This document shows, piece by piece, positions 1 through 64,000 of a DNA stretch of 64,000 nucleotides. Position 1 is the first letter of the stretch, and each line of letters begins with the position of its first letter. The notes below the pieces were generated by a model. That model searched no databases. It had not been told where the DNA came from and worked only from the letters and a program-made list of their open reading frames with translations. The stretch lies in the sequence record MW879344.1; one strand, given 5' to 3'. The translations under genes were made by a program, and so were the position numbers.

Positions 1-268
1 TATCTTCTCCTGAAGTCGCATAGTACTTCGCACTTTTTGTTCAATCACCTTTTTTCAAAAATGATAACATGAGGTTCAGGAAAATCTCGAAGGTACGTGA
101 AATCAAATACGAATTCTAAAAAATTTGGAGTACCCTCTAGACTTTTGCTGCGATCTCGAAAGTACAAAAAACATATAAGGAAGTGTGAAAATTTTATTGA
201 ATTGAAAAGTACTAAAGTACTATTTTGTACTGTACAAAAACACAGTACAAAATTAATTGAAATAAACC

Positions 269-297
269 TTGACGTGTTACGGGTGCGATGATATGAT
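269..297 (+). promoter_or_regulatory. sigma70-like promoter (extended -10) driving an ORF-less transcript
   Basis: TTGACG(269-274)-17 nt-TATGAT(292-297), preceded by TGn. Confidence 0.65.
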
Positions 298-303
298 GTA
301 TCC

Positions 304-566
304 AAGATGAAGAACACAGTTAGACACCTCTCTCGTTGACGCTGTATGAATCATCTAGTACTGGTAAATTGCCGAACATGTTGCCGCATGTTATTACTGG
401 TACGAAATGGGAATACCTTATTCCCCTCTCTCTTTCTCGCTATTGTTCAGGAAAGATTTAGTACTGAACGTTTGGAAGTAATACTGTACTAATTAGGATA
501 GTACTTTATAATGAGTTCTCATGAAGCACACGCTGGAGAATACATTATAAAGTACTATCCTTTTTT
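304..566 (+). ncRNA. Candidate structured RNA
   Basis: Lies between promoter 269-297 and hairpin+T6 at 495-566; internal stems with G-U wobbles (~357-408); no SD-led ORF. Confidence 0.35.
495..566 (+). terminator. Long hairpin/intrinsic terminator (19-bp perfect inverted repeat)
   Basis: AGGATAGTACTTTATAATG(495-513)/CATTATAAAGTACTATCCT(543-561), then T-run. Confidence 0.6.
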
Positions 567-667
567 GCATTGTACTATAAGAATAGAAGTACTGATAGAG
601 TACCTTTTGATAGATGGATTTGTTTTGAGGATTGTCTGAATTTTGGGTGTACTATCCCTATCTGCTA

Positions 668-795
668 TCTATAGATGGATAGACTTCTGGCAGTGTAGAT
701 GTATAGATGGTTGAACGTCTAGACAGCTATCCTTCTGGATGGCTAAATGTCTAGACTTCTAGATGGTTATCCCTCTAGACGTTTAGACGGCTAAA
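668..795. repeat. Degenerate 8-bp tandem array, 16 units, consensus ~YKKCTAGA
   Basis: Units in register: tctataga tggataga cttctggc agtgtaga tgtataga tggttgaa cgtctaga cagctatc cttctgga tggctaaa tgtctaga cttctaga tggttatc cctctaga cgtttaga cggctaaa. Confidence 0.7.
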
Positions 796-887
796 CGCTT
801 TTTTGTCTCGATTTTCCATTAGTTCCCCTTCCGCGTCTAGTTAGTACTAGGCAGAATCGAAAGGCGTCTTTTCGTGTTGACAGAGCT

Positions 888-916
888 ATATTATCAAACG
901 GTGATCCATTATGCAA
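888..916 (-). promoter_or_regulatory. Leftward sigma70-like promoter reading into the 8-bp array
   Basis: Minus strand TTGCAT-17-TAATAT. Confidence 0.5.
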
Positions 917-981
917 GGACTTTTTTCAATAAAAATAAATTTGACAAGTACAAACCGGATGTAGTACTATAATCACAACAA

Positions 982-1021
982 AGAGAAATTTGTAGCCCAC
1001 AGGGTGCCAAGATCCGCCTAT
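982..1021 (+). repeat. Promoter-proximal tripartite element, copy A
   Basis: AGAGAAAT..CCCACAGGGT..CTAT, 11 nt after -10 TACTAT(965-970); -35 TTGACA(941-946). Confidence 0.8.
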
Positions 1022-1056
1022 TAGAAATTAAATGCGAATGAGAATCATTACCGATT

Positions 1057-1097
1057 ATAGGTATATCTCCACACCCTCTGGGGTATCCGATTTCTCT
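1057..1097 (-). repeat. Tripartite element, copy A' (convergent with A)
   Basis: Minus strand AGAGAAAT..CCCCAGAGGGT..CTAT, 11 nt after TTGCAT-17-TATTAT (1109-1137). Confidence 0.8.
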
Positions 1098-1180
1098 CGT
1101 CTGAAATAATAATATCAAAGTACGGTATAAGATGCAAGGACTTTTTTCGTTTTTGGTGAAAATAGTTTAGATCGTTGTAT

Positions 1181-1325
1181 ACGTATAAAGGAAAGGATTT
1201 AAAAGGCGTACAGGTGGAGCGGGGCGAATGTATAGCAGTACTATATAAACGCCGTGTAATGGTTCCTATGCGTTATATGGGGGCGTGTACACGTATAAAG
1301 GAAAGAAACCATATAGCAGAACTAT
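1181..1325. repeat. Pair of short direct repeats in non-coding DNA
   Basis: ACGTATAAAGGAAAG at 1181-1195 and 1291-1305; TATAGCAG(T/A)ACTAT at 1231-1244 and 1312-1325. Confidence 0.6.
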
Positions 1326-1391
1326 TTTTAAAAAGATTGCATAAAGTACTTGCAAAGGTTTACCGGTATGATAATATCTATCTCGTCAACA

Positions 1392-1423
1392 CGACACCGC
1401 TCTTTAACAACTTGCTAGACAAT
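1392..1423 (+). promoter_or_regulatory. rrn-type boxA (NusB/NusE) antitermination site
   Basis: CGACACCGCTCTTTAACAACTTGCTAGACAAT vs E. coli rrn leader CGGCACTGCTCTTTAACAATTTATCAGACAAT (recalled from memory), 26/32 identical; boxA core GCTCTTTAACA exact; weak promoter TTGCAA(1350)/TAATAT(1372) upstream. Confidence 0.7.
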
Positions 1424-1479
1424 TACTTGATAGTGATTCTTCTCTTTAGAAATAAGGAAAAAGAAAAACAAAAAAGTAC

Positions 1480-1507
1480 TTGACAGCAAGAATGGAAAGT
1501 GTAGAAT
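1480..1507 (+). promoter_or_regulatory. sigma70-like promoter with A-rich UP element
   Basis: AAAAAGTAC-TTGACA-16-TAGAAT. Confidence 0.6.
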
Positions 1508-1514
1508 GTTGGTT

Positions 1515-1655
1515 ATCGAAAGGCGGTAAGGTTCGCCGGATGATAGGAAAGGGTAACAGGGCAAAATAAAGTACTGTTGCAGTGTGAAGCCGAAAGTGCT
1601 CACATAGCCTTATAAAAAGCTTACTAACTGTAAGTGACCTATCTACCGCCTAACG
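1515..1655 (+). ncRNA. Candidate multi-branched structured RNA (~140 nt)
   Basis: Closing stems AGGCGGTA(1521-28)/TACCGCCT(1644-51) and GATAGG(1542-47)/CCTATC(1638-43) enclose three hairpins, one with a GAAA tetraloop; own promoter; no ORF. Confidence 0.45.
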
Positions 1656-1784
1656 ATGTAACAAAAAAAGTTTCTAAGAAGTTGAAAAAAGTACTTGACG
1701 GATAGAAACGAAACGTAGTAATATGTGTTCAAGCCAAACGGCTTACCAAACAAACTAAACTAAACTTTTAAGAGGATTTAAATC

Positions 1785-2450
1785 ATGACTACTACCAACA
1801 ACGCAAAAGCTACCCGTATCACTCTGAACTCTATCGTTTTCGCCAATGCTCCAGTACTGGCAGCGGTTGCCGAAGGTGAACAGCCTCACAGCAAAGAAGT
1901 GATCGCACAGCACAAAACGCAGGTAGCGGAGTTTGTTGCAAATCAGGGTAAAGAACTGGCTGGCTACATTCTCGGCAAAGTTGAAACCCCTGACGTGATT
2001 CTGGCGATTCTGAAAGAAGCCGCTAAACAGGTTCCAGCAGTACAGAAACAACTGGCAGAAGAAGCCGCGAAAGCTGAAGCCGAAGCCGAAGCACAGCGTA
2101 AAAAAGACGCTGAAGCCGCTGAAGCGAAACGCAAAGCTGATGAAGAAGCACTTCAGGCCGAAAAAGATAAAATGTTGAAAATCCTTACTGATAGCGGTCT
2201 GGATCTGGAAATCGCTCAAACAATGGTCGCCGCTGGCCTGAAAGCAAAAGCACCAGCAAACGCACCGAAAAACAGCTACGAACGTGTAGCGGTAACGGTG
2301 AACGGCAAAGGCTATGATGTTCCAGTACGTGGGAACATGAGCGAAGAACTCAAAGCACTGGTTGCTAAAGACGGCGGGGATCGTGAAGCGTTTATCAACA
2401 AATACCGCAACGAACCAGCACCAGCAGCAGAAACCAACACCGCCGAATAA
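1785..2450 (+). CDS. Possible H-NS-like nucleoid/DNA-binding protein (221 aa)
   Basis: SD GAGGA; promoter TTGACG at 1695; Ala/Glu/Lys coiled coil, then LTDSGLDLE and a C-terminal TVNGKGYDVPVRGN..LKALVAKDG..EAFI resembling the H-NS DNA-binding domain; function tentative. Confidence 0.5.
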   Translation: MTTTNNAKATRITLNSIVFANAPVLAAVAEGEQPHSKEVIAQHKTQVAEFVANQGKELAGYILGKVETPDVILAILKEAAKQVPAVQKQLAEEAAKAEAEAEAQRKKDAEAAEAKRKADEEALQAEKDKMLKILTDSGLDLEIAQTMVAAGLKAKAPANAPKNSYERVAVTVNGKGYDVPVRGNMSEELKALVAKDGGDREAFINKYRNEPAPAAETNTAE

Positions 2451-2470
2451 TATCACGGCGTAACGCAAAA

Positions 2471-2490
2471 GGGGGCTAGTTAGCCCCCTA
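2471..2490 (+). terminator. GC-rich hairpin after the first gene
   Basis: GGGGGCTA-GT-TAGCCCCC; no clear U-run. Confidence 0.45.
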
Positions 2491-2562
2491 AGCCGTTCTA
2501 ACAGTACTGTAATGCAATCGGTTATAGTACTGTTAGAAACGCTTAAAACAGCGTACATTAAG

Positions 2563-2620
2563 GATTATCTGATAAATAAAAACGGTTGAAGTAATAACAA
2601 GCGTTTTTATAAGGATAATC
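2563..2620 (+). promoter_or_regulatory. SD-sequestering hairpin with late-promoter-like GATAAATA in the left arm
   Basis: GATTATCT/GGATAATC and TAAAAACG/CGTTTTTA stems; SD AAGGA at 2611-2615 partly paired. Confidence 0.5.
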
Positions 2621-2622
2621 AA

Positions 2623-3039
2623 ATGGGAAAACATTTATATAGGAAACCAGAACCCGCAAACGTTCAAGGCGTTTGCTGCGTAGAAGGTTGTAACAACTTA
2701 CAACAAGTAGTTAGAAAGGGCAAGTTTGGCCCATTGTGTTCACCTTGTGATCGTGCAAGGTACAACACAAAAGAAAAAGAGAAGTATGCAGGACTTACCA
2801 AATTATACGGACTAAGTAAAGAACAATATGATCTAATGTTGAGTGAGCAAAATCATTCTTGTTATATATGCGGTATAAAGGATATTGATTGCCCAAAATC
2901 AGTTTTACATGTAGATCATGATCACAGTACTGGAAAGATACGCGGTTTATTATGCCATCATTGCAATACTGGATTAGGACACTTTAAAGACAATGTAGAA
3001 CTGTTACAGAAAGCAATTGAGTACTTAAATCTTAATTGA
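2623..3039 (+). CDS. Endonuclease VII-family nuclease
   Basis: YGLSKEQYDLMLSEQNHSCYICG..LHVDHDHSTGKIRGLLCHHCNTGLGHFKDN: Zn-binding and His-Me motifs of the T4 gp49 family. Confidence 0.9.
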   Translation: MGKHLYRKPEPANVQGVCCVEGCNNLQQVVRKGKFGPLCSPCDRARYNTKEKEKYAGLTKLYGLSKEQYDLMLSEQNHSCYICGIKDIDCPKSVLHVDHDHSTGKIRGLLCHHCNTGLGHFKDNVELLQKAIEYLNLN

Positions 3040-3050
3040 GAGCGTAACAC

Positions 3051-3320
3051 ATGGAACTAAAACCAATTTCTGATCTGATTGATCGCAGTACTCGGATCGC
3101 CAGAACGATGACCGCCACCAGCCCGACAACATCGGTTTATAGTGGTTATCTGGCGTTTGTAGTTAATGGCGAATTAGTACAACGCAGGATCTACGATATG
3201 GCATATAATCATCTTTATGATTCTTGTATGTTCATAACTCACAAGAAAGTTAATTATGCCGTAAATCTTCCATGTAAGCCCCTTAGCGGTGCGTTTAACG
3301 CTGAATCACTAAAGGCATAA
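3051..3320 (+). CDS. Hypothetical protein
   Basis: ORF with SD-like GAG; followed by terminator 3331-3365. Confidence 0.6.
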   Translation: MELKPISDLIDRSTRIARTMTATSPTTSVYSGYLAFVVNGELVQRRIYDMAYNHLYDSCMFITHKKVNYAVNLPCKPLSGAFNAESLKA

Positions 3321-3330
3321 GGTAACATGT

Positions 3331-3365
3331 AAAACCGTGTAGGATCGTTCCTATGCGGTTTTTTT
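3331..3365 (+). terminator. Intrinsic terminator
   Basis: AAAACCGTGTAGGA/TCCTATGCGGTTTT + T-run. Confidence 0.7.
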
Positions 3366-3440
3366 ATTTGTCGAAAGTACTTGCAATAAGTTTTAAGTAC
3401 TGTAGAATATCCTATATCGAAACAACACGGAGTAAATGAA

Positions 3441-3665
3441 ATGAGATTAAGTAAACTGTTAGCGGAGTTGTCGAAGGTTGCAGAACTTGCGAAAGTACAC
3501 GGCAACAATGATCCCGATATTTCTTTTTGGCATGATGAAATTGAAACAATCGAACATTTAGAAGTATCATTCCCGCAAGATCTGGATGATGCCAGAATAC
3601 CGACTAAAGTACTATCGGCAACTGAGAAAGGAAACTTTTCATTTAGATTAGTACTACCAGAATAA
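3441..3665 (+). CDS. Hypothetical early protein
   Basis: SD GGAG; own promoter TTGCAA/TAGAAT 3381-3408. Confidence 0.75.
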   Translation: MRLSKLLAELSKVAELAKVHGNNDPDISFWHDEIETIEHLEVSFPQDLDDARIPTKVLSATEKGNFSFRLVLPE

Positions 3666-3723
3666 TCTTTACAAAAATGGGGTTGACAGCCAGCCCCAAA
3701 AAATGCAATAATATATACAAGCC

Positions 3724-3764
3724 AGAGAAATGGCGTAACCCACAGGGTGCAGAGATCCGTCCGT
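3724..3764 (+). repeat. Tripartite element, copy B
   Basis: AGAGAAAT..CCCACAGGGT..CCGT, 11 nt after TTGACA(3683)-18-AATAAT(3707-12). Confidence 0.8.
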
Positions 3765-3781
3765 AGAAAATTCAGTACTTA

Positions 3782-3822
3782 ATAGATATATCTCGGCACC
3801 CTCTAGGGTATCCGATTTCTCT
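3782..3822 (-). repeat. Tripartite element, copy B' (convergent with B)
   Basis: Minus strand AGAGAAAT..CCCTAGAGGGT..CTAT, 11 nt after TTGCTT-17-CATAAT. Confidence 0.8.
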
Positions 3823-3967
3823 CGTATGTAAGTATTATGCCAGTACTGAGAACATAAAGCAAGGGGTAAACGAAAATAAAAATTAAAATTCAAATGAAAA
3901 AAGTACTTGCATTAAGTTTTAAGTATTGTATACTTACCTTATCGAAACAAATGAAAGGATTTAAGAA

Positions 3968-4360
3968 ATGGAACGTAATGAGCAATTTAGATTAGTTCTT
4001 GAAGTACTGGAAAACATGCAAGCTTGTTTAGATGTTAATGATACATATGTGCGTATCAATGGCAAGAGTTTTAATCTTAATCGACATGCGGGGATCTGCT
4101 GGCATGTTCTCGCCTATACTCCTAATAGTGATTATTCAGGTATTGGGTTAGAATATCTTTCCCCGTTGTTTGTTAGTATGGGCTTACATCCTCATTATCC
4201 TGTAGAAATGCAGATCGTTAATGAGTTAGATCAAGCCCGTTGGATTCATTCAAAAGCAACAGATCAATATAATATCTTGGGCGAAGAAGGAAAGATCCGC
4301 CGTAAACTTTTAAAGGATTTGATTCAGTACTATAAAAAAGAGCTTGCAATTGAATCGTAA
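3968..4360 (+). CDS. Hypothetical early protein
   Basis: SD AAGGA; own promoter at ~3908-3935. Confidence 0.75.
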   Translation: MERNEQFRLVLEVLENMQACLDVNDTYVRINGKSFNLNRHAGICWHVLAYTPNSDYSGIGLEYLSPLFVSMGLHPHYPVEMQIVNELDQARWIHSKATDQYNILGEEGKIRRKLLKDLIQYYKKELAIES

Positions 4361-4399
4361 TACTGTATAATCTTTTATATCGAAACGGGAGATATAATC

Positions 4400-4855
4400 A
4401 TGAATAGCAAACAATTTCAAGATGCAACAAGAGAAGCCTTTTTGAAGTACTTCCCAAATGGCTACATTGGTATTTCTAAATTGTCAATTGGTGGCGGTTG
4501 TGGTATCTTCTGCGGGTTGATTGGTGACATTAATGATGTGGGCGGGAAGATCCGCATGAATGACCCAATGACAGTACGGGCATTCATTCATGATAATTTT
4601 TCATTCAATGACGAAACAACTGATTTAGAAAATGTTGTTATCGAATTCGATGGATCTTGGATCTCAGTACTTCCAGACAATCCACACAATTATTGTCAAT
4701 CTCACAAGGTGCCTAGTCGCAAGATTAACGCGGAGCCGTCAAAGGCATTAATTAATCTAGATAAGTACTTTAAACGCTTAAAGGATAGTGTAACCGAACA
4801 AGCTGGATTGAATCGTATTATTCAGCAAGAAAAGATCCCCGCAAAATATCTATAA
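4400..4855 (+). CDS. Hypothetical early protein
   Basis: SD GGGAG; own promoter. Confidence 0.8.
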   Translation: MNSKQFQDATREAFLKYFPNGYIGISKLSIGGGCGIFCGLIGDINDVGGKIRMNDPMTVRAFIHDNFSFNDETTDLENVVIEFDGSWISVLPDNPHNYCQSHKVPSRKINAEPSKALINLDKYFKRLKDSVTEQAGLNRIIQQEKIPAKYL

Positions 4856-4867
4856 TATATTGTCAAA

Positions 4868-4901
4868 AGTACTTGCATTAAAGTAGCGAGTACTTTACAA
4901 T
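4868..4901 (+). promoter_or_regulatory. Representative AGTACT-flanked sigma70 promoter
   Basis: AGTACT(4868)-TTGCAT(4873)-17-TACAAT(4896) with a second AGTACT at 4889; same layout at 3376, 5864, 7725, 8213, 11116, 13861, 16281. Confidence 0.75.
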
Positions 4902-4930
4902 AAGTTATCGTTAAGTGAGAGGATAAAAAA

Positions 4931-5065
4931 ATGTCAAAGATTGAAGCTTACAGAGCTGGACTGTATATGTTTACAGTACCGCCAGTAATAACCAACGCAT
5001 GGAAAGAAGTTGATTGGATCAATTTTATTGATTCTAATGGTAAATGGATGGTTCCTGTAGTATAA
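4931..5065 (+). CDS. Small hypothetical protein (44 aa, not in ORF track)
   Basis: SD GAGGA, MSKIEAYRAG...WMVPVV. Confidence 0.55.
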   Translation: MSKIEAYRAGLYMFTVPPVITNAWKEVDWINFIDSNGKWMVPVV

Positions 5066-5085
5066 TTTTAATTGAGGGTTTTACT

Positions 5086-5490
5086 ATGTTTTTACATGTA
5101 CGTGGTTTTGCTGGTGGCGGTTTCTGCTTTATGATTGATGATAAAGCGGTATCAGTACAAGAAGCATTGATCCAGAATGGTGGACGTTTCCACAAGGCAA
5201 CAATAAACGCATTGAACAGAAAGAACCTTTTTAATGAGTCAGATTTAAAAGCCTTTGAAGTACTGGCAGAATCATTACATAAAGGTTTAACGCCTTGCTC
5301 CATTCGTCAAATCCTGCGTAATGATTACGGGATCGACGTGTTAAAAACTGATTACCTTATGTTATCATCTTCTCAGGTTGAAGATCTTAAAACGGTTTAT
5401 AAGTACGCACGTTATAAGGTTCCTACGGGTTACGTATTGAAACATTCGCCAATGTACTACTTTTACAGGTATTTGAGCAACGTAAAATAA
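5086..5490 (+). CDS. Hypothetical early protein
   Basis: SD GAGGG before MFLHVRG. Confidence 0.75.
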   Translation: MFLHVRGFAGGGFCFMIDDKAVSVQEALIQNGGRFHKATINALNRKNLFNESDLKAFEVLAESLHKGLTPCSIRQILRNDYGIDVLKTDYLMLSSSQVEDLKTVYKYARYKVPTGYVLKHSPMYYFYRYLSNVK

Positions 5491-5495
5491 TTTAA

Positions 5496-5533
5496 AAAAG
5501 GGGTTGACTTCGGTCAGCCCTTTGTAGTACTAT
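5496..5533 (+). promoter_or_regulatory. Terminator-promoter cassette (PeSL-like)
   Basis: GGGGTTGAC-TTCG-GTCAGCCC-TTT hairpin containing -35 TTGACT(5504), -10 TACTAT(5528). Confidence 0.7.
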
Positions 5534-5544
5534 AGTATCACTCC

Positions 5545-5586
5545 AGCGAAATGGACTAACCCTATAGGGTGTAGTACTGTACCTAT
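5545..5586 (+). repeat. Tripartite element, copy C
   Basis: AGCGAAATGGACTAACCCTATAGGGT..CTAT, 11 nt after -10. Confidence 0.85.
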
Positions 5587-5679
5587 AATAAAAATAATTA
5601 AAATTCAAATGAAAAAGTACTTGCATTACGTATTGAGTCATGTATAATCATTATATCGAAAGCAAACGAGGATTTAACG

Positions 5680-5856
5680 ATGGATCATTTAATCGCATTA
5701 CTTAATGCCTTTTGTATTAAACATGGGTTAGTACCTGCTAGTGCCGATGAAATGCTAATCGAGTATTTGGGTACTGAAAATCCAGATCCTGCAATTGTTT
5801 CATGGTTACAAGCTTATATTGTACTGTGGGACTGTACAAGTGATTTAGGTTTATAA
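5680..5856 (+). CDS. Small hypothetical protein (58 aa, not in ORF track)
   Basis: SD GAGGA, own promoter; MDHLIALLN... Confidence 0.6.
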   Translation: MDHLIALLNAFCIKHGLVPASADEMLIEYLGTENPDPAIVSWLQAYIVLWDCTSDLGL

Positions 5857-5928
5857 TTAAAATAGTACTTGCAATAATATGTGAGTACTGTATAATTCTT
5901 TATATCGAAAACAAACGAGGATTTTTAA

Positions 5929-6357
5929 ATGAGAACATGTAAAGAGTGTGGTAATGATTGCAAGTTAGATGTAAATGAAATCGTTAACCATTATAACGAA
6001 GATGGGAAGATTGATTTTGATTTAGATGCGGATCATGTTGCAATTCCTGAATTAACCGACGCCGAAAGTAATATGCAAAATCCAGTACTACAAACGGCAT
6101 TCAATTTTTCCGGTGATGTACCTTGCATTAACTACGGGTTCAATTCTGGCGGTTATGAAAAATTCCAGTACTTTATTTGTGCTGATGGTGGTTGTTTAGG
6201 GATCGGGACTGTAATTAATGAGTTCCATAAAGTGAACTTTAATGATCCTGATGATAAGCAATGGTATATCGTAGGGGTTGAAGTTAATTACGAAAATACC
6301 GAACTGGTAGACGATCACACAGGGGATTACATACCAGCAGCATACAGCGAAAACTAA
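5929..6357 (+). CDS. Hypothetical early protein
   Basis: SD GAGGA; own promoter 5869-5896. Confidence 0.75.
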   Translation: MRTCKECGNDCKLDVNEIVNHYNEDGKIDFDLDADHVAIPELTDAESNMQNPVLQTAFNFSGDVPCINYGFNSGGYEKFQYFICADGGCLGIGTVINEFHKVNFNDPDDKQWYIVGVEVNYENTELVDDHTGDYIPAAYSEN

Positions 6358-6397
6358 ACAAAAGCAAAGGGGATCTATGATCCCCTTTTGAGGTTAT

Positions 6398-6661
6398 ATG
6401 AATTTACATTATTGTACCAGAAAATTAGTTGTTGCTTTTGATTGTAGTTCTGATAAAATACATTGTGTAATATACAGAAAGGGAACACCACGCACAGATC
6501 ACTGGAAAGTACTGCAATCCTATACAATGCAACGTAAAGGGTTTAAGCACCTTGATAGCAGGACACAAAAGGCATGTTTACGGCAAGTACTTAAAGTTAT
6601 GCGTAATCGTATTACACAGGCGTTACATGTTGCATTAACTACCAAGGATATGATAGAATGA
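6398..6661 (+). CDS. Hypothetical basic protein
   Basis: SD GAGG. Confidence 0.65.
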   Translation: MNLHYCTRKLVVAFDCSSDKIHCVIYRKGTPRTDHWKVLQSYTMQRKGFKHLDSRTQKACLRQVLKVMRNRITQALHVALTTKDMIE

Positions 6662-6825
6662 AATATGTAATCTATTATGATCGCAGTACTAAAAGCTGGT
6701 GGGGGTACTGGATTGATGAAAATGAAAATCAGTTAGGTGAAGCTGTTTTTGAATATCAAAAAGAAGATTGCCTGATACTCTTAGGAGAAGTCAAGGAAAA
6801 TCGTCGGAATTTAATTCAAAAATAA
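6658..6825 (+). CDS. Small hypothetical protein (55 aa, not in ORF track)
   Basis: ATGA overlap with upstream stop; MKYVIYYDRSTKSWWGYW. Confidence 0.55.
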   Translation: MKYVIYYDRSTKSWWGYWIDENENQLGEAVFEYQKEDCLILLGEVKENRRNLIQK

Positions 6826-6878
6826 ATGAAAAAAGTACTTGCATTCATGTGAGTACTTTTATATAATACTTACATCGA

Positions 6879-6920
6879 AGCGAAATTCGAATTGCCCACA
6901 GGGTGCGGAAGTATATCTAT
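6879..6920 (+). repeat. Tripartite element, copy D
   Basis: AGCGAAAT..CCCACAGGGT..CTAT, 11 nt after TTGCAT-17-TATAAT(6862-67). Confidence 0.85.
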
Positions 6921-7090
6921 AAAAAAGAATTAAAATTTAAATGAAAAAGTACTTGCATTAGATCGTGGATATGGTATTATAACTACATCGAAAGGCACTA
7001 AGGAAACAAATATGAAACGCTGGCATGAAGTACTGTTGTTCGTTTTGTTTATTCTGGTAACTTGTGTAAATTTTAATTGAGAGGTTCAAA

Positions 7091-7330
7091 ATGTCTTTAT
7101 ATAAAGTAGTAGTGAACTGTATTAGTGTTGGTATGGCTGGATCTCATACTCTGTTAGTATCTGGTGACTTCCCGCATATTAACGAGGCAAGAATAGGGAT
7201 CAATGAGTGGGCGGCTAATGAGTACGCCGGACGCTTAGATGTTAACGTAACATTTTTGAATCATTCAGATCAAATTTATGTTACTGATTTGAAATCATCA
7301 GATTATGATAAAGTTATTATAATGCGTTAA
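7091..7330 (+). CDS. Hypothetical protein
   Basis: SD GAGG. Confidence 0.7.
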   Translation: MSLYKVVVNCISVGMAGSHTLLVSGDFPHINEARIGINEWAANEYAGRLDVNVTFLNHSDQIYVTDLKSSDYDKVIIMR

Positions 7331-7432
7331 CTATATTATCAAAAGTACTGGACAAATCAACATCATTAGAGTATCATCTTTGTATCGAAGAAGATTGGTA
7401 TTGTTAATTAACTTTTAAGTGAGATATAATTA

Positions 7433-7711
7433 ATGAAAGCATACGAACATAAGACCATGACAGTTGCGGATCTTATTGCTAAACTGGAAAGTACTTATCC
7501 GAACAAAAACGCCGTTATCGTTGCGGATCTATGGGACGAAGACGATATTCGTGAAGTAGCACAGGATATTAATATTCAGCTCGACCGCGAAGAATGTCGA
7601 GTAGTAGCGGCTTATCTGGATGATACCGCAGATAAGACCAATGGTTATAATGATGATAACATTAAGTTAGCCATTTATCAAGTTATCAATTTGGGACTTA
7701 TTAATCCTTAA
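7433..7711 (+). CDS. Hypothetical protein
   Basis: SD GAGA; own promoter. Confidence 0.7.
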   Translation: MKAYEHKTMTVADLIAKLESTYPNKNAVIVADLWDEDDIREVAQDINIQLDREECRVVAAYLDDTADKTNGYNDDNIKLAIYQVINLGLINP

Positions 7712-7801
7712 CTATATTATCAAAAGTACTTGCAAATAGAAAGCGAGTACTTTATAATGAAGTTATTGAATCGGTACTTATTAACTAAGAGGAAGTATAT
7801 C

Positions 7802-8002
7802 ATGGCTCAAAAAGATCGTCGTTACTCAGTACAGGGTGAATTCACCGGAGCACCAAAGAAAGAGTTTGTTATTCGTTTCTGTGGTACGTTCGTTTCTGCT
7901 CATGCCACCCGCGATCTGGCTGATAAAGAAGTTGCCCGCCGCAAAGCTGAAATGGATACCCCGATGGTTAAATCGTCATGGTCAACAGTGGAGGCGGTAT
8001 AA
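7802..8002 (+). CDS. Hypothetical early protein
   Basis: SD GAGG before MAQKDRR; promoter 7730-7758. Confidence 0.75.
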   Translation: MAQKDRRYSVQGEFTGAPKKEFVIRFCGTFVSAHATRDLADKEVARRKAEMDTPMVKSSWSTVEAV

Positions 8003-8202
8003 TGTCAGTTGCTAAACACGCTACACGTGAATATAGCATTCACGACAAAGACACATCAGCATCAGACAATGGTTTATCACTGATCCGTGTTATTGAGTTA
8101 GTACCGGATCTGTCTAATGATGAATTGTGTAGCATCGTTGATCTGGAAGTGACAACCTCAATTGATATTAGTACTAATATCATTGTCATTCGCACGAAGT
8201 AA
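8002..8202 (+). CDS. Hypothetical protein
   Basis: TAATG coupling, SD GGAGG. Confidence 0.7.
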   Translation: MSVAKHATREYSIHDKDTSASDNGLSLIRVIELVPDLSNDELCSIVDLEVTTSIDISTNIIVIRTK

Positions 8203-8276
8203 ATTGATTAAAAGTACTTGCTTATTACTGGCGAGTACTTTATAATGGTTACACTATTAAGCGAGAGGATAACAAA

Positions 8277-8576
8277 ATGAAATTTACAGTACAAGTCGAA
8301 GGGGTTGATCTAGTATCAGTCGTCGCAGCATTACAAGAAGCCGCTAGACTTATCGAAGATGGGAATACTTCTGGATTTGATCGTAATGAAGATGGGAATT
8401 TTTATTTTGTAGAAGGCGATCAGCACTTGTTTAGTACTGGTGAATCATGTACAATGCATACAGCCGTTTGTGAAATGGTGGAGCGTTTACATCAAGGCAA
8501 TCATTATGATAATGATGAAGAACGGCAAGCTGATATTGATGTGATGAATAAATTACAAAAAGTAACAGGACGCTAA
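8277..8576 (+). CDS. Hypothetical early protein
   Basis: SD GAGGA; promoter 8218-8246; terminator AGTACTGG/CCAGTACT+T after. Confidence 0.75.
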   Translation: MKFTVQVEGVDLVSVVAALQEAARLIEDGNTSGFDRNEDGNFYFVEGDQHLFSTGESCTMHTAVCEMVERLHQGNHYDNDEERQADIDVMNKLQKVTGR

Positions 8577-8631
8577 ACAACAAGTACTGGTGAAATATCC
8601 AGTACTGTTTTTATATACAGCTTATTCTTTA

Positions 8632-8673
8632 ATAGATACATTTTCGCACCCTGTGGGTCAAAGACATTTCGCT
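8632..8673 (-). repeat. Tripartite element, copy E
   Basis: Minus strand AGCGAAAT..CCCACAGGGT..CTAT, 12 nt after TTGACA(8709-14)-17-TATTAT. Confidence 0.85.
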
Positions 8674-8802
8674 GTCTATGAAGTAATAATACAGTACTTT
8701 GGTAATGGTGTCAAGGATTAAATTAAAATTAAAACGAAAAAAAGCACTTGTAATTATCATGTAGTACTGTATAATCTTTTATATCGAAACGGGAGAATTG
8801 AA

Positions 8803-9105
8803 ATGAGATTTATCAAATACAGTTTGATAGGGTATTTTGGTATGGCATTACTTTGTACCGTACTTGTTATATGCATTACCGTATTAGATTATTTCGATGG
8901 TGATTTTTACGTTAAGTATATCTATGGTGGTTCACATTTCCGTTATGTAATTGAATTTGCATTACCTGCGATATTTAAAAGTAGCTTTTGGGGCGTACCG
9001 TGTGCTATACTGATAGCATGGAAAGTTGATCGTATCAAGGCGAATGATATGCATAACAATAGTATTAAAGAGCATTTTGGTATTGACTACCCTAAGAAGG
9101 ATTGA
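8803..9105 (+). CDS. Hypothetical membrane protein
   Basis: SD GGGAG; hydrophobic segments. Confidence 0.7.
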   Translation: MRFIKYSLIGYFGMALLCTVLVICITVLDYFDGDFYVKYIYGGSHFRYVIEFALPAIFKSSFWGVPCAILIAWKVDRIKANDMHNNSIKEHFGIDYPKKD

Positions 9106-9109
9106 TATA

Positions 9110-9355
9110 ATGAGTACCACATTGAAAGCACTGGTGTCATTATTATTCTCAGTACTGTTAACATTCTTATTGTTAACGGAGGCAAGAGATGGTATTGTAT
9201 GGCGGCTAACAATGTTAGCATATGAAATTGAAGATACTTGGTATTCTTTCTTGACATATGGTAGCAATGGGGTGTATGCTATATTTCTAGCTGGTATACT
9301 TTACATTTTATTTTGTTTAATGTTTGCTATGATGGGAGATAGTCATGAGAGTTGA
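9110..9355 (+). CDS. Hypothetical membrane protein
   Basis: SD AAGGA before MSTTLK; two hydrophobic helices. Confidence 0.65.
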   Translation: MSTTLKALVSLLFSVLLTFLLLTEARDGIVWRLTMLAYEIEDTWYSFLTYGSNGVYAIFLAGILYILFCLMFAMMGDSHES

Positions 9356-9385
9356 GCCAATCAGTAGAATTATTAAGTTAGCAAG

Positions 9386-9432
9386 TAGTACTGTCAAGAA
9401 TGAATATCCAAAAAATATTGTTGACAGTACTA
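9386..9432. promoter_or_regulatory. 12-bp inverted repeat carrying back-to-back TTGACA boxes
   Basis: TAGTACTGTCAA(9386-97)/TTGACAGTACTA(9421-32). Confidence 0.55.
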
Positions 9433-9509
9433 GCAGTACTGTGGTACATTTAGGTCAAGCAACAACGGGTTGCTATGATAAACGTGGTTTAATAAAATGA
9501 GGATTGAAA

Positions 9510-10367
9510 ATGGGTAAGCATATTTTTTGGGGTTGTTTAGGTCTGATTGGTTTACTCGCCATTGGTGCGTTGTTGGGTTCGTTCTATACGGTAGACCAAC
9601 AGGATCGCGGTGTAGTACTGACTAACGGTAAAATTACAGAAATTGCCGAGCCTGGTCTGAACTGGAAAAAGCCATTCGTTACATCGGTGATTGAAATTCC
9701 GGTAACTGGTCAGAACAAAAGTTATCCGAACCTTAAAGCGTACAGTCGCGATCAGCAGCCAGCAGATATGTCGGTTTCCGTATCGTTCGCCGTTCCAGCG
9801 GGTAAAGTGGGGGATCTGTATAGTACTTTCGGGACTATCGAAAACCTTACAGCACGTGTAATTGACCGTCAAGTACCGCAAGCAGTTGAAAACGTATTTG
9901 GTCAGTTTAACGCGATTACCGCCGTACAGGATCGTAATAAGTTAGTAACTAACTTAAACATTGCAATTAAAAAGGCGATGGAAAACTATCCAGTAATTAT
10001 TGAATCGGTACAGGTTGAAAACTTATCATTCAGCCCTGCATATGAAAAATCAATTGAAGAACGTATGCAAGCCGAGATTGCAGTAACTAAACGTGAGCAG
10101 GACTTTGCACAGGCTAAGATCTCTGCGTCAATCACGGTAGCCAACGCACAGGCCGAAGCTGATAGCCAGCTTGCTAAGGCAACAGCAGCAGCGAAAGCGA
10201 CACGCCTACAGGGTGAAGCTGATGCAGCAGCAATTAAGGCGAAGTCTGACGCACTTAGCAATAATCCGCAACTCGTACAGTTGGCAGCAGTTGACAAGTG
10301 GGATGGTGTACTACCTACGCAAATGGTTCCAGGTTCTACCGTTCCATTCGTGAATCTCAACAAGTAA
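9510..10367 (+). CDS. SPFH/band 7/prohibitin-family membrane protein
   Basis: N-terminal TM; YTVDQQDRGVVLTNGK..EPGLNWKKPF; coiled coil; LSNNPQLVQLAAVDKWDGVLP. Confidence 0.9.
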   Translation: MGKHIFWGCLGLIGLLAIGALLGSFYTVDQQDRGVVLTNGKITEIAEPGLNWKKPFVTSVIEIPVTGQNKSYPNLKAYSRDQQPADMSVSVSFAVPAGKVGDLYSTFGTIENLTARVIDRQVPQAVENVFGQFNAITAVQDRNKLVTNLNIAIKKAMENYPVIIESVQVENLSFSPAYEKSIEERMQAEIAVTKREQDFAQAKISASITVANAQAEADSQLAKATAAAKATRLQGEADAAAIKAKSDALSNNPQLVQLAAVDKWDGVLPTQMVPGSTVPFVNLNK

Positions 10368-10380
10368 TTGTATCACAAAA

Positions 10381-17241: not shown

Positions 17242-17262
17242 TAATTAAGTACTAAAATCATG

Positions 17263-54530: not shown

Positions 54531-54538
54531 GAAATATT

Positions 54539-54561
54539 GGAGTACTTCGGTACTCCATTTT
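54539..54561 (+). terminator. Intrinsic terminator with UUCG loop
   Basis: TGGAGTAC-TTCG-GTACTCCA-TTTT. Confidence 0.75.
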
Positions 54562-61151: not shown

Positions 61152-61198
61152 TATTGTTGGGGATACTTATGTATCCCCTTTTTATTAAGGAAGAATAT

Positions 61199-61633
61199 AT
61201 GGAAATATATCTATCAGGAATAGTACTGAAATTAAATGAACCAAATCATAATGGTAGAATTTATTCACAGAAAGAAGTTTCAAAAAATATTAGTAATTTG
61301 CAAACTGATATATTAAGCGGGTCATTGCTTTCTGAAATTGATCCACTTGAGAGAACTACAACTATTAATTTAGATAATGTCGGTGGTTTAGTTGCACGGT
61401 TAGAAATTGTAAATGATAACTTAGAAAGTACTGTTCAAATATTACCAACGGTTCGAGGCCAGCAGCTTATTAGAATGTTGGAAGGTAATGGTGAAGTATT
61501 TTTAAGTTCTCGCGGTACTGGTCAAATTGATAGTGATGGAAATGTTACTAATTATGAATTAATTACAGTTGATATTTTACCATTCCACCTATGCGACGAC
61601 CCCGATAAAATTTGCAAAGTGATAGTGAAATAA
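61199..61633 (+). CDS. T4 gp21-like prohead protease paralog, possibly inactive
   Basis: NHNGRIYS, SSRGTG, ITVDI; SEIDP where active enzymes have GEL.HP. Confidence 0.65.
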   Translation: MEIYLSGIVLKLNEPNHNGRIYSQKEVSKNISNLQTDILSGSLLSEIDPLERTTTINLDNVGGLVARLEIVNDNLESTVQILPTVRGQQLIRMLEGNGEVFLSSRGTGQIDSDGNVTNYELITVDILPFHLCDDPDKICKVIVK

Positions 61634-61693
61634 TTGAAACAGCAGTGAAAATTGTGGTATAATGTACCCATAACAAAAGAGAAGGAAACAAAG

Positions 61694-61948
61694 ATGGCTA
61701 AGCAAAACGATAAAGATGTAAAAAGTACCCGCAAAGAACTTATGTACAAAAACGAGCAGCTTGAGAATCTATTAGAGCTACGCCGCAAGGGTATTCTAAC
61801 CCGTCAGCAGTTCCGTCTATTGACCTTTGATAAAGGTCTACAGGGCAGCACCAAGGGTTCTCCACTAATCGAAGTGTTCGAGTTGGAGAAACAAGGAAAG
61901 GGTAAACCAGTCCTTGTCCAAAAAGTTCGTCAATGGACTCGCACTTAA
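61694..61948 (+). CDS. Small basic protein with own sigma70 promoter
   Basis: TTGAAA(61634)-18-TATAAT(61658); SD AAGGA. Confidence 0.75.
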   Translation: MAKQNDKDVKSTRKELMYKNEQLENLLELRRKGILTRQQFRLLTFDKGLQGSTKGSPLIEVFELEKQGKGKPVLVQKVRQWTRT

Positions 61949-62076
61949 TTTCTGGCCTGTTTTGATATAAACAACATAAATAAGTTTACAATAATAAAAA
62001 TATTTTTGACTCCATGTTGTTTATATTACATTCTTTTAAGGCCACGCAATGTGGCCTTTTTTATTGGAAAAATAAA

Positions 62077-62802
62077 ATGATTAACAAAGAAGAAGTAAGT
62101 AAAGCAGCACGAGAAATTGTTCATCACATTATTCTAGATAATATCTATGGATATTTCGAAGAATTAGGTACACCAAATATTGTTGTGTACGGTTCATTCA
62201 TCGAAATGACTTCTGGTTTTGATGTGAAGCCAAATGATATTGATGTTACGATTGTACTTGATGGGGAGTTACCTGAACCACGTCATAAATCATTCTATTT
62301 AAACTTTGTTGAACTACCAATTAATGTAGAGTATATGAGTCGTGAATCATTTCAAAAAGAATTGCATTCATTTCAACCAAAGTACTTTATGTGCACAGCT
62401 ACTCCTGAACTAAGTGAAGAAATTGATTCTGTATGGAAGAATAAAGAAATTCACGAAGTACGTTCTGGTATAAGTTCAGTAACTTCCAAAGCCTTTGATA
62501 AAGGTCGTAAAAAACTACTAGTTGAAGATGACTATGATGAAGTACTAGGATTAAAAAATATCTATCATGCGTTTAAGTTTCCAATTTATGCTAAATGGCA
62601 TTTCTATCCAGAATTGGCTGAACGTGATTATATTACAGACATTCAGTACTTGAATGAGATTCATAAAGGAATTTATGAGGCTTACAATAATAGTACTGGC
62701 ACATTAGAAGAACGTTGTGCGGCGGTTGTACAATTTGCTAAACCACATCATTTATCATTGATGACTGGCTTCCGCATACTATTTCCTAAAAAGGTAGAAT
62801 AA
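62077..62802 (+). CDS. Pol-beta-superfamily nucleotidyltransferase
   Basis: VVYGS..NDIDVTIV. Confidence 0.7.
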   Translation: MINKEEVSKAAREIVHHIILDNIYGYFEELGTPNIVVYGSFIEMTSGFDVKPNDIDVTIVLDGELPEPRHKSFYLNFVELPINVEYMSRESFQKELHSFQPKYFMCTATPELSEEIDSVWKNKEIHEVRSGISSVTSKAFDKGRKKLLVEDDYDEVLGLKNIYHAFKFPIYAKWHFYPELAERDYITDIQYLNEIHKGIYEAYNNSTGTLEERCAAVVQFAKPHHLSLMTGFRILFPKKVE

Positions 62803-63014
62803 TGATAGTGTTTATAATTATTGGAATGGTTTTATTATTTCTATTTGGCCTCGCTGCTATTATTGGAAGTGTTATTATTCCAATGTATGTATGTGCATGG
62901 ACAGGAAAAGTATCAAAGGGTGAGATTGCAATCAGTATTATAATGTTTGTAATTGGTGCATTTTCATGGTACTATGTGTTTTCTCATATGAGTCTCAACA
63001 TAGGTATTAGTTAA
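62802..63014 (+). CDS. Small membrane protein
   Basis: TAATG coupling; two TM segments. Confidence 0.6.
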   Translation: MIVFIIIGMVLLFLFGLAAIIGSVIIPMYVCAWTGKVSKGEIAISIIMFVIGAFSWYYVFSHMSLNIGIS

Positions 63015-63151
63015 TGGGTGAAATTATTTTTGCATTAATTGAATGTTTAGTTGAATTAATGTGTATGGGTGCAGCAGGATTTTGGATTGTTATGTGTATT
63101 TTAGCAATTGCTGCTGTTGCTGGTTTTGGTTATTGGGCATATATTTGTTAA
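63014..63151 (+). CDS. Small membrane protein (45 aa, not in ORF track)
   Basis: TAATG coupling; hydrophobic. Confidence 0.5.
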   Translation: MGEIIFALIECLVELMCMGAAGFWIVMCILAIAAVAGFGYWAYIC

Positions 63152-63228
63152 GGAATTAAAATGATATTACTTATAAAAGGGCGAATGACTTTCCGATTAT
63201 GAATTTTTAATCATAATAAGGAGGACAT

Positions 63229-63771
63229 ATGTTCTTTAAGCAAAAATTTAAAATCTGCTATGATAATGGCAATTTCGTAGAAGTTGATGATTTATTAGGA
63301 TATATTGGTTACACTTACGGTGCAGCCGAAGCATTCTACCAAAGAATGAAATTCACTGTTAAAATTGATAAAAGTAGCTTCTGGTCATATTCACATTCAA
63401 GTATGAATGATTTGGTTCAAACATTTTACTTATTCACTGAAAACAATATCATGATTTCTCCTGAATTGTTTAAAGGTGAGTACTTAAAATATCGTAATCT
63501 AGAAACTCAAATTTGGCACAGAAATCGTTTATATTCAATGAAACAATGGCGTCATTTCAATTATCGTCGCAGTCATACGACTACCTATGATCGTCGTATG
63601 GAAACTATCGCAGAACGCCGAGCTATTGCTGGTGTTGTGAAAGAAGAAGGTGAACCAGAATTTCGTGGTCGCCGCCGTTGTATTCCTAATCCGTGGGATG
63701 ATATAATGGCTCGTCGCAGTCTTTCTTGGAAAGATTGTACAAAAAGAAAACGTCAATATAAAGGAAGCTAA
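63229..63771 (+). CDS. Hypothetical basic protein
   Basis: SD AGGAGG; C-terminal PNPWDD..SWKDCTKRKRQY. Confidence 0.75.
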   Translation: MFFKQKFKICYDNGNFVEVDDLLGYIGYTYGAAEAFYQRMKFTVKIDKSSFWSYSHSSMNDLVQTFYLFTENNIMISPELFKGEYLKYRNLETQIWHRNRLYSMKQWRHFNYRRSHTTTYDRRMETIAERRAIAGVVKEEGEPEFRGRRRCIPNPWDDIMARRSLSWKDCTKRKRQYKGS

Positions 63772-63798
63772 ATGCTTCCTTTTTTCTTAGGAAAAATC

Positions 63799-64000
63799 AT
63801 GAACTCTGATGATCTATTACAAGCACGAACATTACTAAATGAACTTACTGTTGAAGGTCGAAGCTTTGCTGCAACTCGTTATATGTTTAATAACGAACCA
63901 TCATACCAAGATAACAAATATTCATCTGAATTAATTAACTGGATGAATACAAATAATCTAATAGTACTATCCAGTACTTACGATTTAGATTCCTACTATA
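63799..64000 (+). CDS. Partial ORF running off the window
   Basis: SD AGGA before MNSDDLLQAR; open to 64000. Confidence 0.55.
   Translation, partial: MNSDDLLQARTLLNELTVEGRSFAATRYMFNNEPSYQDNKYSSELINWMNTNNLIVLSSTYDLDSYY

Follow-up and report, generated by a model that had tools for sequence, protein, structure and literature searches.

For 30 years highly iterated palindromes, known to us essentially from cyanobacteria, have posed an unsolved problem. HIP1 (GCGATCGC) and the alternate palindromes of cyanobacteria are short, occur in at least 10-fold excess, about once per few hundred bp, and are found in all reading frames as well as between genes. The distribution of HIP1 is periodic over 10–90 kb (Xu et al. 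2018, PMC5861425) and sequences one base away from it deviate mostly at the outer positions, around a methylated core (Elhai 2015, PMC4390886). How are such sites kept? Elhai proposed methylation-directed repair or recombination (PMC4390886), and selection on HIP1 was inferred by Xu, Lawrence and Durand from the same kind of conservation evidence as is given here (2018, PMC5861425). The hexamer AGTACT, analysed in the first 64 kb of the 358 kb genome of Erwinia jumbo phage pEa_SNUABM_49 (MW879344.1; this 64 kb stretch is referred to here as the window), behaves like a viral counterpart of HIP1. It shares with HIP1 its short length, its large excess, a frequency of one copy per few hundred bp and the presence in all reading frames as well as between genes, together with positions conserved beyond background, outer-biased one-mismatch variants and a genome with orphan methyltransferases (MTases). 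HIP1 is 15–300 times more abundant than expected; AGTACT exceeds the first-order expectation 15.6-fold in the window and 10.8-fold in the whole genome.

The window holds 282 copies of AGTACT against 18.1 ± 4.2 (maximum 28) in dinucleotide-preserving shuffles, which places it 63 SD above them, and AGTACT is the sole outlier among all hexamers, at 13 times the zero-order expectation. The copies form a dispersed, unstranded array from 22 to 63980, at about 4.4 per kb; the GTAC cores, which include them, number 651 where 201 were expected. Genome-wide there are 1,065 copies (about 98 expected), roughly one per 336 bp, spread across the whole genome with Poisson-like short-range spacing (gap CV 0.98); for a period of 10–90 kb a genome of 358 kb offers little power. 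The enrichment is real and stronger than a sequence-only reading of the window had stated; the 12 copies counted there by hand in a 1.55 kb coding stretch (19697–21247, plus strand) are exact, with about 0.4 expected, and the G+C content given as about 32% is actually about 34.7%. Five GTAC cores, two of them AGTACT, are also clustered in 45 bp of non-coding leader (205–250, unstranded). Which bases matter? In the window, variants mismatched at an outer position reach 2.4–2.8 times expectation, those that break the core 0.74–1.26 times, and no specific one-mismatch neighbour is depleted. Information outside the hexamer amounts to only about 0.12 bit: G is disfavoured at −1, there is no preference at −2 or −3 across the genome, and the preference at −1 is, on both strands, the mirror image of that at +1. 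A polar chromosome signal such as Chi or KOPS was considered and rejected, as AGTACT is its own reverse complement, its flanks are mirror-symmetric and strand asymmetry is absent.

Is the excess visible beneath the protein code? Under within-gene synonymous shuffling the window retains 223 coding copies against 55 ± 6, about four-fold in each frame, and the whole genome 855 against 209 ± 12.5 (3.6–5.5-fold per frame), so the codon and amino-acid correction asked for in the sequence-only reading leaves the excess standing; six control palindromes treated likewise across the genome give 0.8–1.3-fold. AGTACT occupies all three frames and non-coding DNA, where its density is at least that of coding DNA; 921 of 1,059 classifiable sites (87%) lie within ORFs and the metagene profile is flat. 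The pressure has distorted the phage proteome: Ser-Thr dipeptides stand at 1.54-fold (Thr-Ser at 1.02-fold) and Val-Leu at 1.3-fold, 61% of Ser-Thr dipeptides are encoded by AGTACT where 15% would be expected, and the Tyr codon is TAC in 80% of AGTACT-matching contexts and in 25% of cases elsewhere.

Comparison with relatives shows that AGTACT is the best-conserved common hexamer, with 72% of sites kept against 35% in the comparison with Yen9-04 and 49% against 23% with GAP32, across 20–27% nucleotide divergence. Of the synonymous third positions, 91% are conserved inside the sites and 72% elsewhere (p = 2e-11); in non-coding DNA the sites reach 78% against 43% (p = 3e-5), and bare GTAC is not conserved above background. 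AGTACT is maintained by a force on the double-stranded hexamer itself, which fixes synonymous codons and inflates Ser-Thr and Val-Leu. Every Rak2-like phage sampled carries the enrichment, at 8–17-fold in samples of at least 20 kb (Eneladus-, Mimas-, Asterius- and Alcyoneusvirus, Munch, and metagenomic clade contigs) and 6–7-fold in two shorter clade fragments; it is absent from the outgroups PA5oct, Atu_ph07, T4 and one relative with a ligase of 27% identity. Hyper-abundant, frame-independent, positionally conserved, clade-wide and with a HIP1-like variant bias, AGTACT qualifies as a genuine highly iterated palindrome, one that belongs to the enterobacterial Rak2-like jumbo-phage clade, and on this point the sequence-only reading is fully upheld.

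What is the site for? Of the 64 hexamer palindromes, 28 are absent from the 358 kb genome, and GCGC, which the host carries at 7 per kb, is found 0 times where 215 copies would be expected. The phage DNA therefore appears exposed to restriction, and 1,065 ScaI-type sites are nonetheless tolerated. The density of AGTACT is 3 per kb in the phage and 0.06 per kb in the host sample (100 kb of E. coli K-12), a difference of about 50-fold. It rises to 6.0–6.8 per kb at 1–19500 of the window (unstranded), a zone whose homologue in phage CBB is the terminal direct repeat of 22,456 bp: position 1 of the window aligns with position 1 of CBB, where this repeat has its left end, and CBB itself has 7.25 copies per kb at 1–4 kb. 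We favour, with a probability of roughly 40%, a selected ‘self’ mark on double-stranded DNA, read by a putative restriction-modification-type enzyme or binding protein. A clade-specific, dyad-symmetric protein of that type would recognise AGTACT, with a sharp specificity of 6 bp and only a weak rule of no G at −1. This putative reader probably modifies or protects the site, which would make AGTACT the one palindrome that the phage can afford. Protection does not by itself account for the enrichment; the abundance of the mark (3 per kb in the phage and 6–7 in the terminal repeat, against 0.06 in the host) may itself be selected as the label of ‘self’. We infer these three parts: a protein reader, modification of the site, and a density that serves self-recognition or protection. 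RaK2 DNA has been reported as heavily methylated (PMC3622015), and the literature searched contained no methylome for any clade member.

Which enzyme could modify AGTACT? Two MTases were found, an N4-cytosine-type enzyme, which is missing in sub-clades that still have the enrichment, and a candidate modifier of the Dam family (PF05869, E = 3.5e-27), a DNA N6-adenine MTase encoded at 31082–31621 on the plus strand. The latter gene is the middle one of a conserved triad: 9 bp upstream lies a clade-restricted ORF of 175 aa (30546–31073, plus strand) and downstream a cytidylyltransferase-like nucleotidyltransferase (31628–32179, plus strand). The same three-gene synteny and the Dam-family gene occur in every clade member sampled, with no loss variants seen, making it the only MTase found in all sub-clades sampled. 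The sequence-only reading had made this enzyme a candidate cause: it would methylate GTAC or AGTACT, and methylation-directed mismatch repair or recombination would create and preserve the sites. Its constant presence, the outer-biased variants around GTAC, which recall those of HIP1 around a methylated core (PMC4390886), and the fact that restriction pressure, which removed 28 other palindromes, must somehow spare AGTACT all speak for this proposal. Inside the clade the gene is universal, so the suggested correlation with MTase presence cannot discriminate there; outside the clade the gene does not predict the motif. A Lactococcus phage whose MTase, at about 50% identity, ranks among the closest outside homologues has 0 copies of AGTACT where 9.5 would be expected, and 63 unrelated viral contigs that carry the closest such homologues have 120 against 204, a mild avoidance, and no iterated palindrome. 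As far as is known, characterised members of the phage Dam family methylate GATC, and the score of this enzyme falls under the NCBIfam equivalog cut-off, so no function can be assigned at family level. A Vsr- or MutH-like repair partner is not found next to the gene, the confident structure model of the 175-aa ORF matches no known fold and nothing nuclease-like, and the bare GTAC core is not conserved. The role of the MTase in making sites has thus gained no positive support, and we consider it unlikely rather than refuted, since specificity can change at 50% identity and no other MTase is present in all sub-clades sampled.

Could the sites accumulate without any function? Positional conservation and a terminal density peak would also follow from a drive in which biased gene conversion or heteroduplex repair favours AGTACT, most strongly in terminal repeats that recombine in every cycle. 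Density is indeed highest in the terminal-repeat homologue and the adjoining right end whatever the sequence conservation, G+C is raised in the same terminal zone, gains specific to one lineage (16 and 14) outnumber losses (10 and 5), and two recent insertions are poor in the motif. On the other side, breakpoints between close relatives show no significant association with AGTACT sites, the cost of hundreds of altered dipeptides argues for a compensating benefit, and we know of no enzyme with this specificity. The conservation of positions over 20–27% divergence also weighs against it; in the case of HIP1, Xu et al. took such conservation as evidence against replenishment by biased repair (PMC5861425). 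Functionless drive is a somewhat less probable origin than the MTase.

A role in RNA or transcription, in which AGUACU would be selected for terminator or regulatory hairpins or for marking promoters, has real structures behind it, and the five described in the sequence-only reading all exist. The inverted repeats given there as about 495–561, 2496–2538 and 9386–9432 fold with z-scores of −10.2, −8.5 and −4.2: the first is a long hairpin at 479–577 (−34.3 kcal/mol) with AGTACT in both arms (500–505 and 551–556), the second a hairpin at 2489–2545 with CAGTACTG in both arms, and the third has the arms TAGTACTGTCAA and TTGACAGTACTA. The two terminator stems carry AGTACT or GTAC, one at 8583–8606 with the stem AGTACTGG/CCAGTACT followed by a T-run, the other at 54538–54557 with a UUCG loop, arms GGAGTAC and GTACTCC and a U-rich tail (z = −2.6); all five are on the plus strand. 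AGTAC is moreover fused to the −35 box of 14 early promoters of the composite form AGTAC-TTGACA-N16-TAGAAT (for example 1475–1507, plus strand; the other 13 start at 1690, 3376, 5864, 7344, 7725, 11116, 11613, 13861, 15210, 16281, 18327, 18637 and 19126), and it occurs at 4.4% of strong sigma-70-like sites against 0.3% expected. Hairpins and promoters nevertheless cover only a few percent of the sites, most of which lie in ORFs with a flat metagene profile, and mirror-symmetric flanks fit duplex DNA and not single-stranded RNA. Close pairs of AGTACT are not in excess in the window (34 gaps of at most 40 nt against about 45 under a Poisson model). We regard an RNA-level or promoter-level explanation of the array as very improbable, and the site as a hairpin building block was rejected, closely spaced inverted pairs being only a handful and 87% of sites intragenic.

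Even less probable is a binding platform for a host nucleoid protein such as SlmA. The SlmA-binding sequence (SBS), the 12-bp GTGAGTACTCAC (Tonthat et al. 2011, PMC3020112), is like AGTACT a palindrome with AGTACT at its centre, distributed over enterobacterial chromosomes, and all known hosts of the clade are Enterobacterales, which encode SlmA. The important positions are, however, opposite: SlmA requires G1, T2, A4 and G5 and tolerates central changes (PMC3020112), whereas in the phage motif the GTAC core is strict, the outer GT..AC is missing, no preference is seen at −2/−3 and G is disfavoured at −1. In the 358 kb genome the exact SBS occurs 0 times, a version with at most one mismatch once and GAGTACTC only 5 times, and SlmA, the one concrete host candidate compared, was rejected as the reader. 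A protein-binding platform in the wider sense, the alternative given in the sequence-only reading, may still apply. Finally, the idea that the excess is a side effect of amino-acid composition, of codon usage or of repeated genes has next to no chance and is already refuted by synonymous shuffling: the codons AGT, ACT and GTA are common in the genome, but a four-fold excess per frame is left, codon choice depends on context, non-coding DNA is just as rich, the sites are scattered genome-wide and outgroups of similar G+C lack the enrichment.

How does the proposed sequence-based ‘self’ mark sit among known systems? AGTACT differs from HIP1 in being a 6-mer and not an 8-mer, A+T-rich and not G+C-rich, and carried by a lytic virus instead of a cellular chromosome; 28 other hexamer palindromes have been lost from its genome, it is densest at the genome termini, its cognate MTase is only a candidate and its inner core GTAC is not conserved alone. 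It would be a second, independent highly iterated palindrome, in a virus that is small, replicates fast and lends itself to genetics, and clade members grow on laboratory E. coli, which makes questions of the HIP type testable. It also shows how far DNA-level pressure can reach into a viral proteome, with hundreds of extra Ser-Thr and Val-Leu dipeptides, and the excess combined with the purge offers a simple signature for finding this clade in metagenomes. The uptake sequences (DUS/USS) of Neisseria and Pasteurellaceae resemble the proposed role, being dense, genome-wide, selected oligomers that mark self DNA, but they are non-palindromic, 9–12 nt long and read by the uptake apparatus, whereas AGTACT is palindromic and its reader putative. 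The GATC/Dam/SeqA/MutH system of enterobacteria likewise uses a palindromic, methylated, genome-wide mark for strand discrimination and origin sequestration, and site density matters; its readers are known and GATC is near expectation in E. coli (1.17-fold in a 100 kb K-12 sample), in contrast to about 11-fold for AGTACT. T4 offers the viral parallel, as a large virulent phage that marks its own DNA with hydroxymethylcytosine and is nuclease-immune; hydroxymethylcytosine pathway genes have not been reported for the clade (PMC5259590, PMC3622015). The case bears on how jumbo phages without hypermodification cope with restriction. A speculative, and on balance unlikely, reading is that sequence content replaces base hypermodification as a self/non-self code of Rak2-like phages, made of AGTACT saturation and the exclusion of GCGC and 27 more hexamer palindromes. 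With such a code, sequence alone could direct phage enzymes to attack or silence the DNA of the host, and to recognise, protect or process that of the phage. T4 uses base chemistry for this purpose; Rak2-like phages would use sequence content.

In the window, one hexamer stands apart from all the rest: AGTACT, with 282 copies where dinucleotide-preserving shuffles give 18.1 ± 4.2. GTAC is present 651 times (201 expected). The whole genome holds 1,065 copies of the hexamer (about 98 expected), a density of 2.97 per kb. The sequence-only reading had counted 12 copies in 19697-21247, which is exact, and the hairpins and inverted repeats that it quoted are all real. Could codon or amino-acid usage produce such numbers? 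The check was to shuffle synonymous codons within each gene, which alters neither the encoded protein nor the codon usage of that gene. The excess survived, as 223 copies versus 55 ± 6 in the window and 855 versus 209 ± 12.5 genome-wide, which rules out a codon or amino-acid artefact. It amounts to 3.6-5.5-fold in every frame, with six control palindromes at 0.8-1.3x, and non-coding DNA is at least as rich in AGTACT as coding DNA. Codon choice depends on context: AGT-ACT writes 61% of Ser-Thr dipeptides (15% expected), GTA-CTN writes 58% of Val-Leu dipeptides (20% expected), and TAC is used for Tyr in 80% of xAG-Tyr-Txx contexts versus 25% elsewhere. The pressure for AGTACT has altered proteins too, as Ser-Thr is over-represented 1.54-fold (Thr-Ser 1.02) and Val-Leu 1.34-fold (Leu-Val 0.96). 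The outgroup phages show no such codon-context or dipeptide bias.

Are the sites also kept over time? When the window is aligned to Yersinia phage fHe-Yen9-04 (Yen9-04; ~79% identity) and to GAP32 (~73%), AGTACT is the best-conserved common hexamer, at 72% versus 35% and 49% versus 23%, respectively. Synonymous third positions are 91% conserved in sites and 72% conserved in identical codons elsewhere (p = 2e-11); for TAC the figures are 85% and 44%. Non-coding sites are conserved at 78% versus 43% (p = 3e-5), or 72% versus 28% against GAP32. These alignments indicate that AGTACT sites are actively maintained. GTAC cores that are not part of AGTACT show no more than background conservation; GTAC was thus rejected as the primary conserved unit, and the maintained unit is the hexamer. 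Turnover runs both ways: with GAP32 as outgroup, 45 sites are shared by the three genomes, 16 and 14 are lineage-specific and 10 and 5 were lost, the differences between genomes being mostly transitions at G2/C5. Enrichment of GTAC cores rises from 1.4-2.1x with no correct flank to 2.4-2.8x with one A/T flank and 13x with both, and core-breaking one-mismatch variants stand at 0.74-1.26x. Beyond the hexamer there is ~0.12 bit at position -1 (C/A favoured, G disfavoured) and at most 0.04 bit elsewhere, alike at coding and non-coding sites; an extended 14-bp footprint was dropped, with no more than 0.13 bit outside the hexamer. The flank preferences mirror each other on the two strands in all sub-clades, which, together with the scarcity of information outside the hexamer, suggests a dyad-symmetric reading of duplex DNA, sharply confined to 6 bp, of the kind practised by restriction-modification enzymes. 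Spacing of the sites is Poisson-like (CV 0.98), their metagene profile is flat and gene length has no effect.

The window matches positions 1-64,000 of MW879344.1 at 100% identity, the full genome of 358,049 bp being that of Erwinia phage pEa_SNUABM_49 (pEa49), a jumbo myovirus of the genus Eneladusvirus, with Serratia phage BF and Yen9-04. The wider Rak2-like group comprises Eneladusvirus, Mimasvirus (GAP32, CBB, XbC2), Asteriusvirus (phAPEC6/121Q-type), Alcyoneusvirus (RaK2, K64-1) and Salmonella phage Munch. AGTACT is enriched in every clade member sampled: 16x in both pEa47 and Yen9-04, 17.5x in GAP32, 15x in CBB and 12x in XbC2 among the mimasviruses, and 10x in phAPEC6, 12x in K64-1 and 10x in Munch. 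In clade contigs from IMG/VR the figures are 8-15x at the methyltransferase (MTase) locus and 6-14x where the ligase lies. No enrichment shows in PA5oct, Atu_ph07, T4 or a contig with a 27%-identical ligase, so the enterobacterial Rak2-like clade has it as a derived trait. In the window at 19613-25172, some ten ORFs of similar size (142-219 aa) follow one another in tandem, probably as a paralogous family; they have counterparts in GAP32, CBB and XbC2 and a longer run in K64-1. Inside a large tRNA cluster of pEa49, an annotated tRNA with a CTA anticodon ('tRNA-Pyl'; L006:26410-26485, genome 290,410-290,485) is a possible amber suppressor.

The pEa49 genome (358 kb) has been purged of other palindromes. 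Of the 64 hexamer palindromes, 28 do not occur at all, where 4-93 copies of each are expected; GATATC occurs once (106 expected), and the tetramer GCGC is missing (215 expected). Nearly all of these absences recur across the Rak2-like clade (L008-L012, L014 and L015, the relatives' sequences), and none of them is found in PA5oct, Atu_ph07 or T4, where counts are normal. Some G+C-rich palindromes, CACGTG (81 versus 42), GTGCAC and ACCGGT, escape the purge, of which no published mention was found. The absolute loss of GCGC might be due to a GCGC nuclease encoded by the phage and not to host restriction. The purge makes the DNA look strongly exposed to restriction, and 1,065 ScaI-type sites are all the more remarkable for it. 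A 100 kb stretch of E. coli K-12 contains just 6 AGTACT (0.06 per kb, O/E 0.66) but 7.2 GCGC per kb, so that these two words separate phage from host DNA almost perfectly. Across the whole pEa49 genome there are 16 copies of the E. coli Chi octamer GCTGGTGG and 12 of its complement, versus ~1.5 expected each; the orientation is unfit for end protection, and a codon effect of GCT-GGT is the probable reason.

What would keep such a word? The reading that we prefer, at a probability of roughly 40%, is that a putative clade-specific protein of restriction-modification type reads AGTACT on duplex DNA, probably with modification or protection of the site, and that selection favours its high density as a mark of self.

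The sequence-only reading had suggested that the N6A-MTase at 31082-31621 may methylate GTAC/AGTACT, with a methylation-directed repair or recombination process creating the sites. On the METHYLTRANSFERASE question, PF05869 (E = 3.5e-27) places this ORF in the Dam family of phage enzymes; its score lies under the NCBIfam equivalog cut-off. A paper on Hia5-type non-specific adenine MTases gave no support for taking these as its relatives, since they are Dam/DpnM-like. The phage MTase gene lies in a triad (30546-32179) with a 175-aa ORF and a cytidylyltransferase-like nucleotidyltransferase, the same in every clade genome examined. No loss variant was found in the clade, which makes the within-clade correlation of gene and motif uninformative. 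Outside the clade the association is negative: AGTACT is missing (9.5 expected) from a Lactococcus 936-group phage whose homologue is 50% identical, and the 63 viral contigs that carry the closest homologues (44-55% identity) have 120 AGTACT versus 204, GTAC at expectation and no iterated palindrome of any kind. Repair of the Vsr type should deplete one-mismatch neighbours, and none is specifically depleted. The MTase as cause lacks support, and the MTase-plus-repair model is a live but less probable reading. The 175-aa ORF upstream is restricted to the clade; its model (pLDDT 82) predicts a beta-hairpin-repeat and a helical domain and, though confident, has no structural match that would make it a nuclease or reader.

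Is another MTase responsible? A second one (PF01555, SPPY motif) lies beyond the window at L002:22969-23829 (genome 86,969-87,829), its best solved relative being the N4-cytosine MTase M.PvuII. Found only in Eneladus- and Mimasvirus (85-100% identity), it was rejected as the general cause, since Asterius-, Alcyoneus- and Munch-type phages have the motif without it. Its target must differ from the canonical PvuII site, as the genome has no CAGCTG. Linked restriction genes gave no clue to its specificity, as its homologues stand alone in prophages or mobile elements, orphans with no informative neighbours, and a 187-aa neighbour, with genus-level homologues only, is not a conserved partner in a restriction-modification cassette. 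In Yen9-04, a lineage-specific insertion upstream of the DNA ligase (L008:39746-41031), not in pEa49, carries a 'type II DNA modification methyltransferase' (g080) and a small ORF, and is motif-poor (2 AGTACT in 1.3 kb). According to published work, only methylation-insensitive enzymes cut RaK2 DNA (PMC3622015), and phAPEC6 encodes N6A and C5 MTases (PMC7247149). Full-text searches and the CBB, Eneladusvirus, RaK2 and phAPEC6 papers yielded no methylome, no earlier description and no mention of AGTACT.

Also live, though a little less probable, is a functionless conversion drive, which would be strongest in recombinogenic terminal repeats. AGTACT density is 6-7 per kb over 1-20 kb, ~2-3 in mid-genome and rises again over the last ~45 kb. 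Aligned and unaligned DNA are equally dense within each zone, which rules out sequence constraint as the cause of the gradient. Homology between the window and CBB reaches to the very first bases, position 1 of one matching position 1 of the other; in CBB this is the left boundary of a terminal repeat of 22,456 bp, which read depth and PFGE support (PMC5259590). The densest zone is therefore the terminally redundant end, and it is the early-gene region as well. The first 4 kb of CBB have 7.25 AGTACT per kb. Five of 12 indel or replacement breakpoints lie within 20 bp of AGTACT versus 21% expected, a sample too small to judge. We conjecture a link between the dense termini and DNA entry or end protection. 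G+C runs in parallel with AGTACT density, at 37% in 1-20000 (the terminal-repeat homologue), 31-35% in the next 40 kb and, rising again, 35-36% over the genome's final 15 kb. The non-coding leader (1-1750), probably the physical left end, has 15 AGTACT, iterated TCTAGAC/TAGATGG units at ~660-790 (spacings 8-32 bp) and duplicated promoter-like blocks of 38-40 nt; it could be an origin, packaging site or injection-control region.

A role at the RNA or hairpin level is minor at best, as close AGTACT pairs show no excess that would make hairpin pairing the driver, and binding of host SlmA was set aside because its site GTGAGTACTCAC shares the core, yet its critical bases are the opposite ones to those of the phage motif, and the genome has no exact copy.

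How does AGTACT compare with known systems? Fourteen early promoters of sigma-70 type in 1475-19160 have AGTAC fused to the -35 box (A-tract + AGTAC-TTGACA-N16-18-TATAAT), and genome-wide 4.4% of strong sigma-70-like sites are so built versus 0.3% expected; the class is real, yet it takes up only ~2% of AGTACT sites. Some of these promoters are embedded in terminator-like hairpins (e.g. 15208-15235), an arrangement that recalls the promoter/stem-loop cassettes of T4-type phages, which mediate module shuffling. The likeness to HIP1, the highly iterated palindrome of cyanobacteria, held on every sequence-level criterion that was tested, and by these criteria the evidence supports AGTACT as a HIP-type iterated palindrome. 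What is new here is such a palindrome in a virus, set in an otherwise palindrome-free genome.
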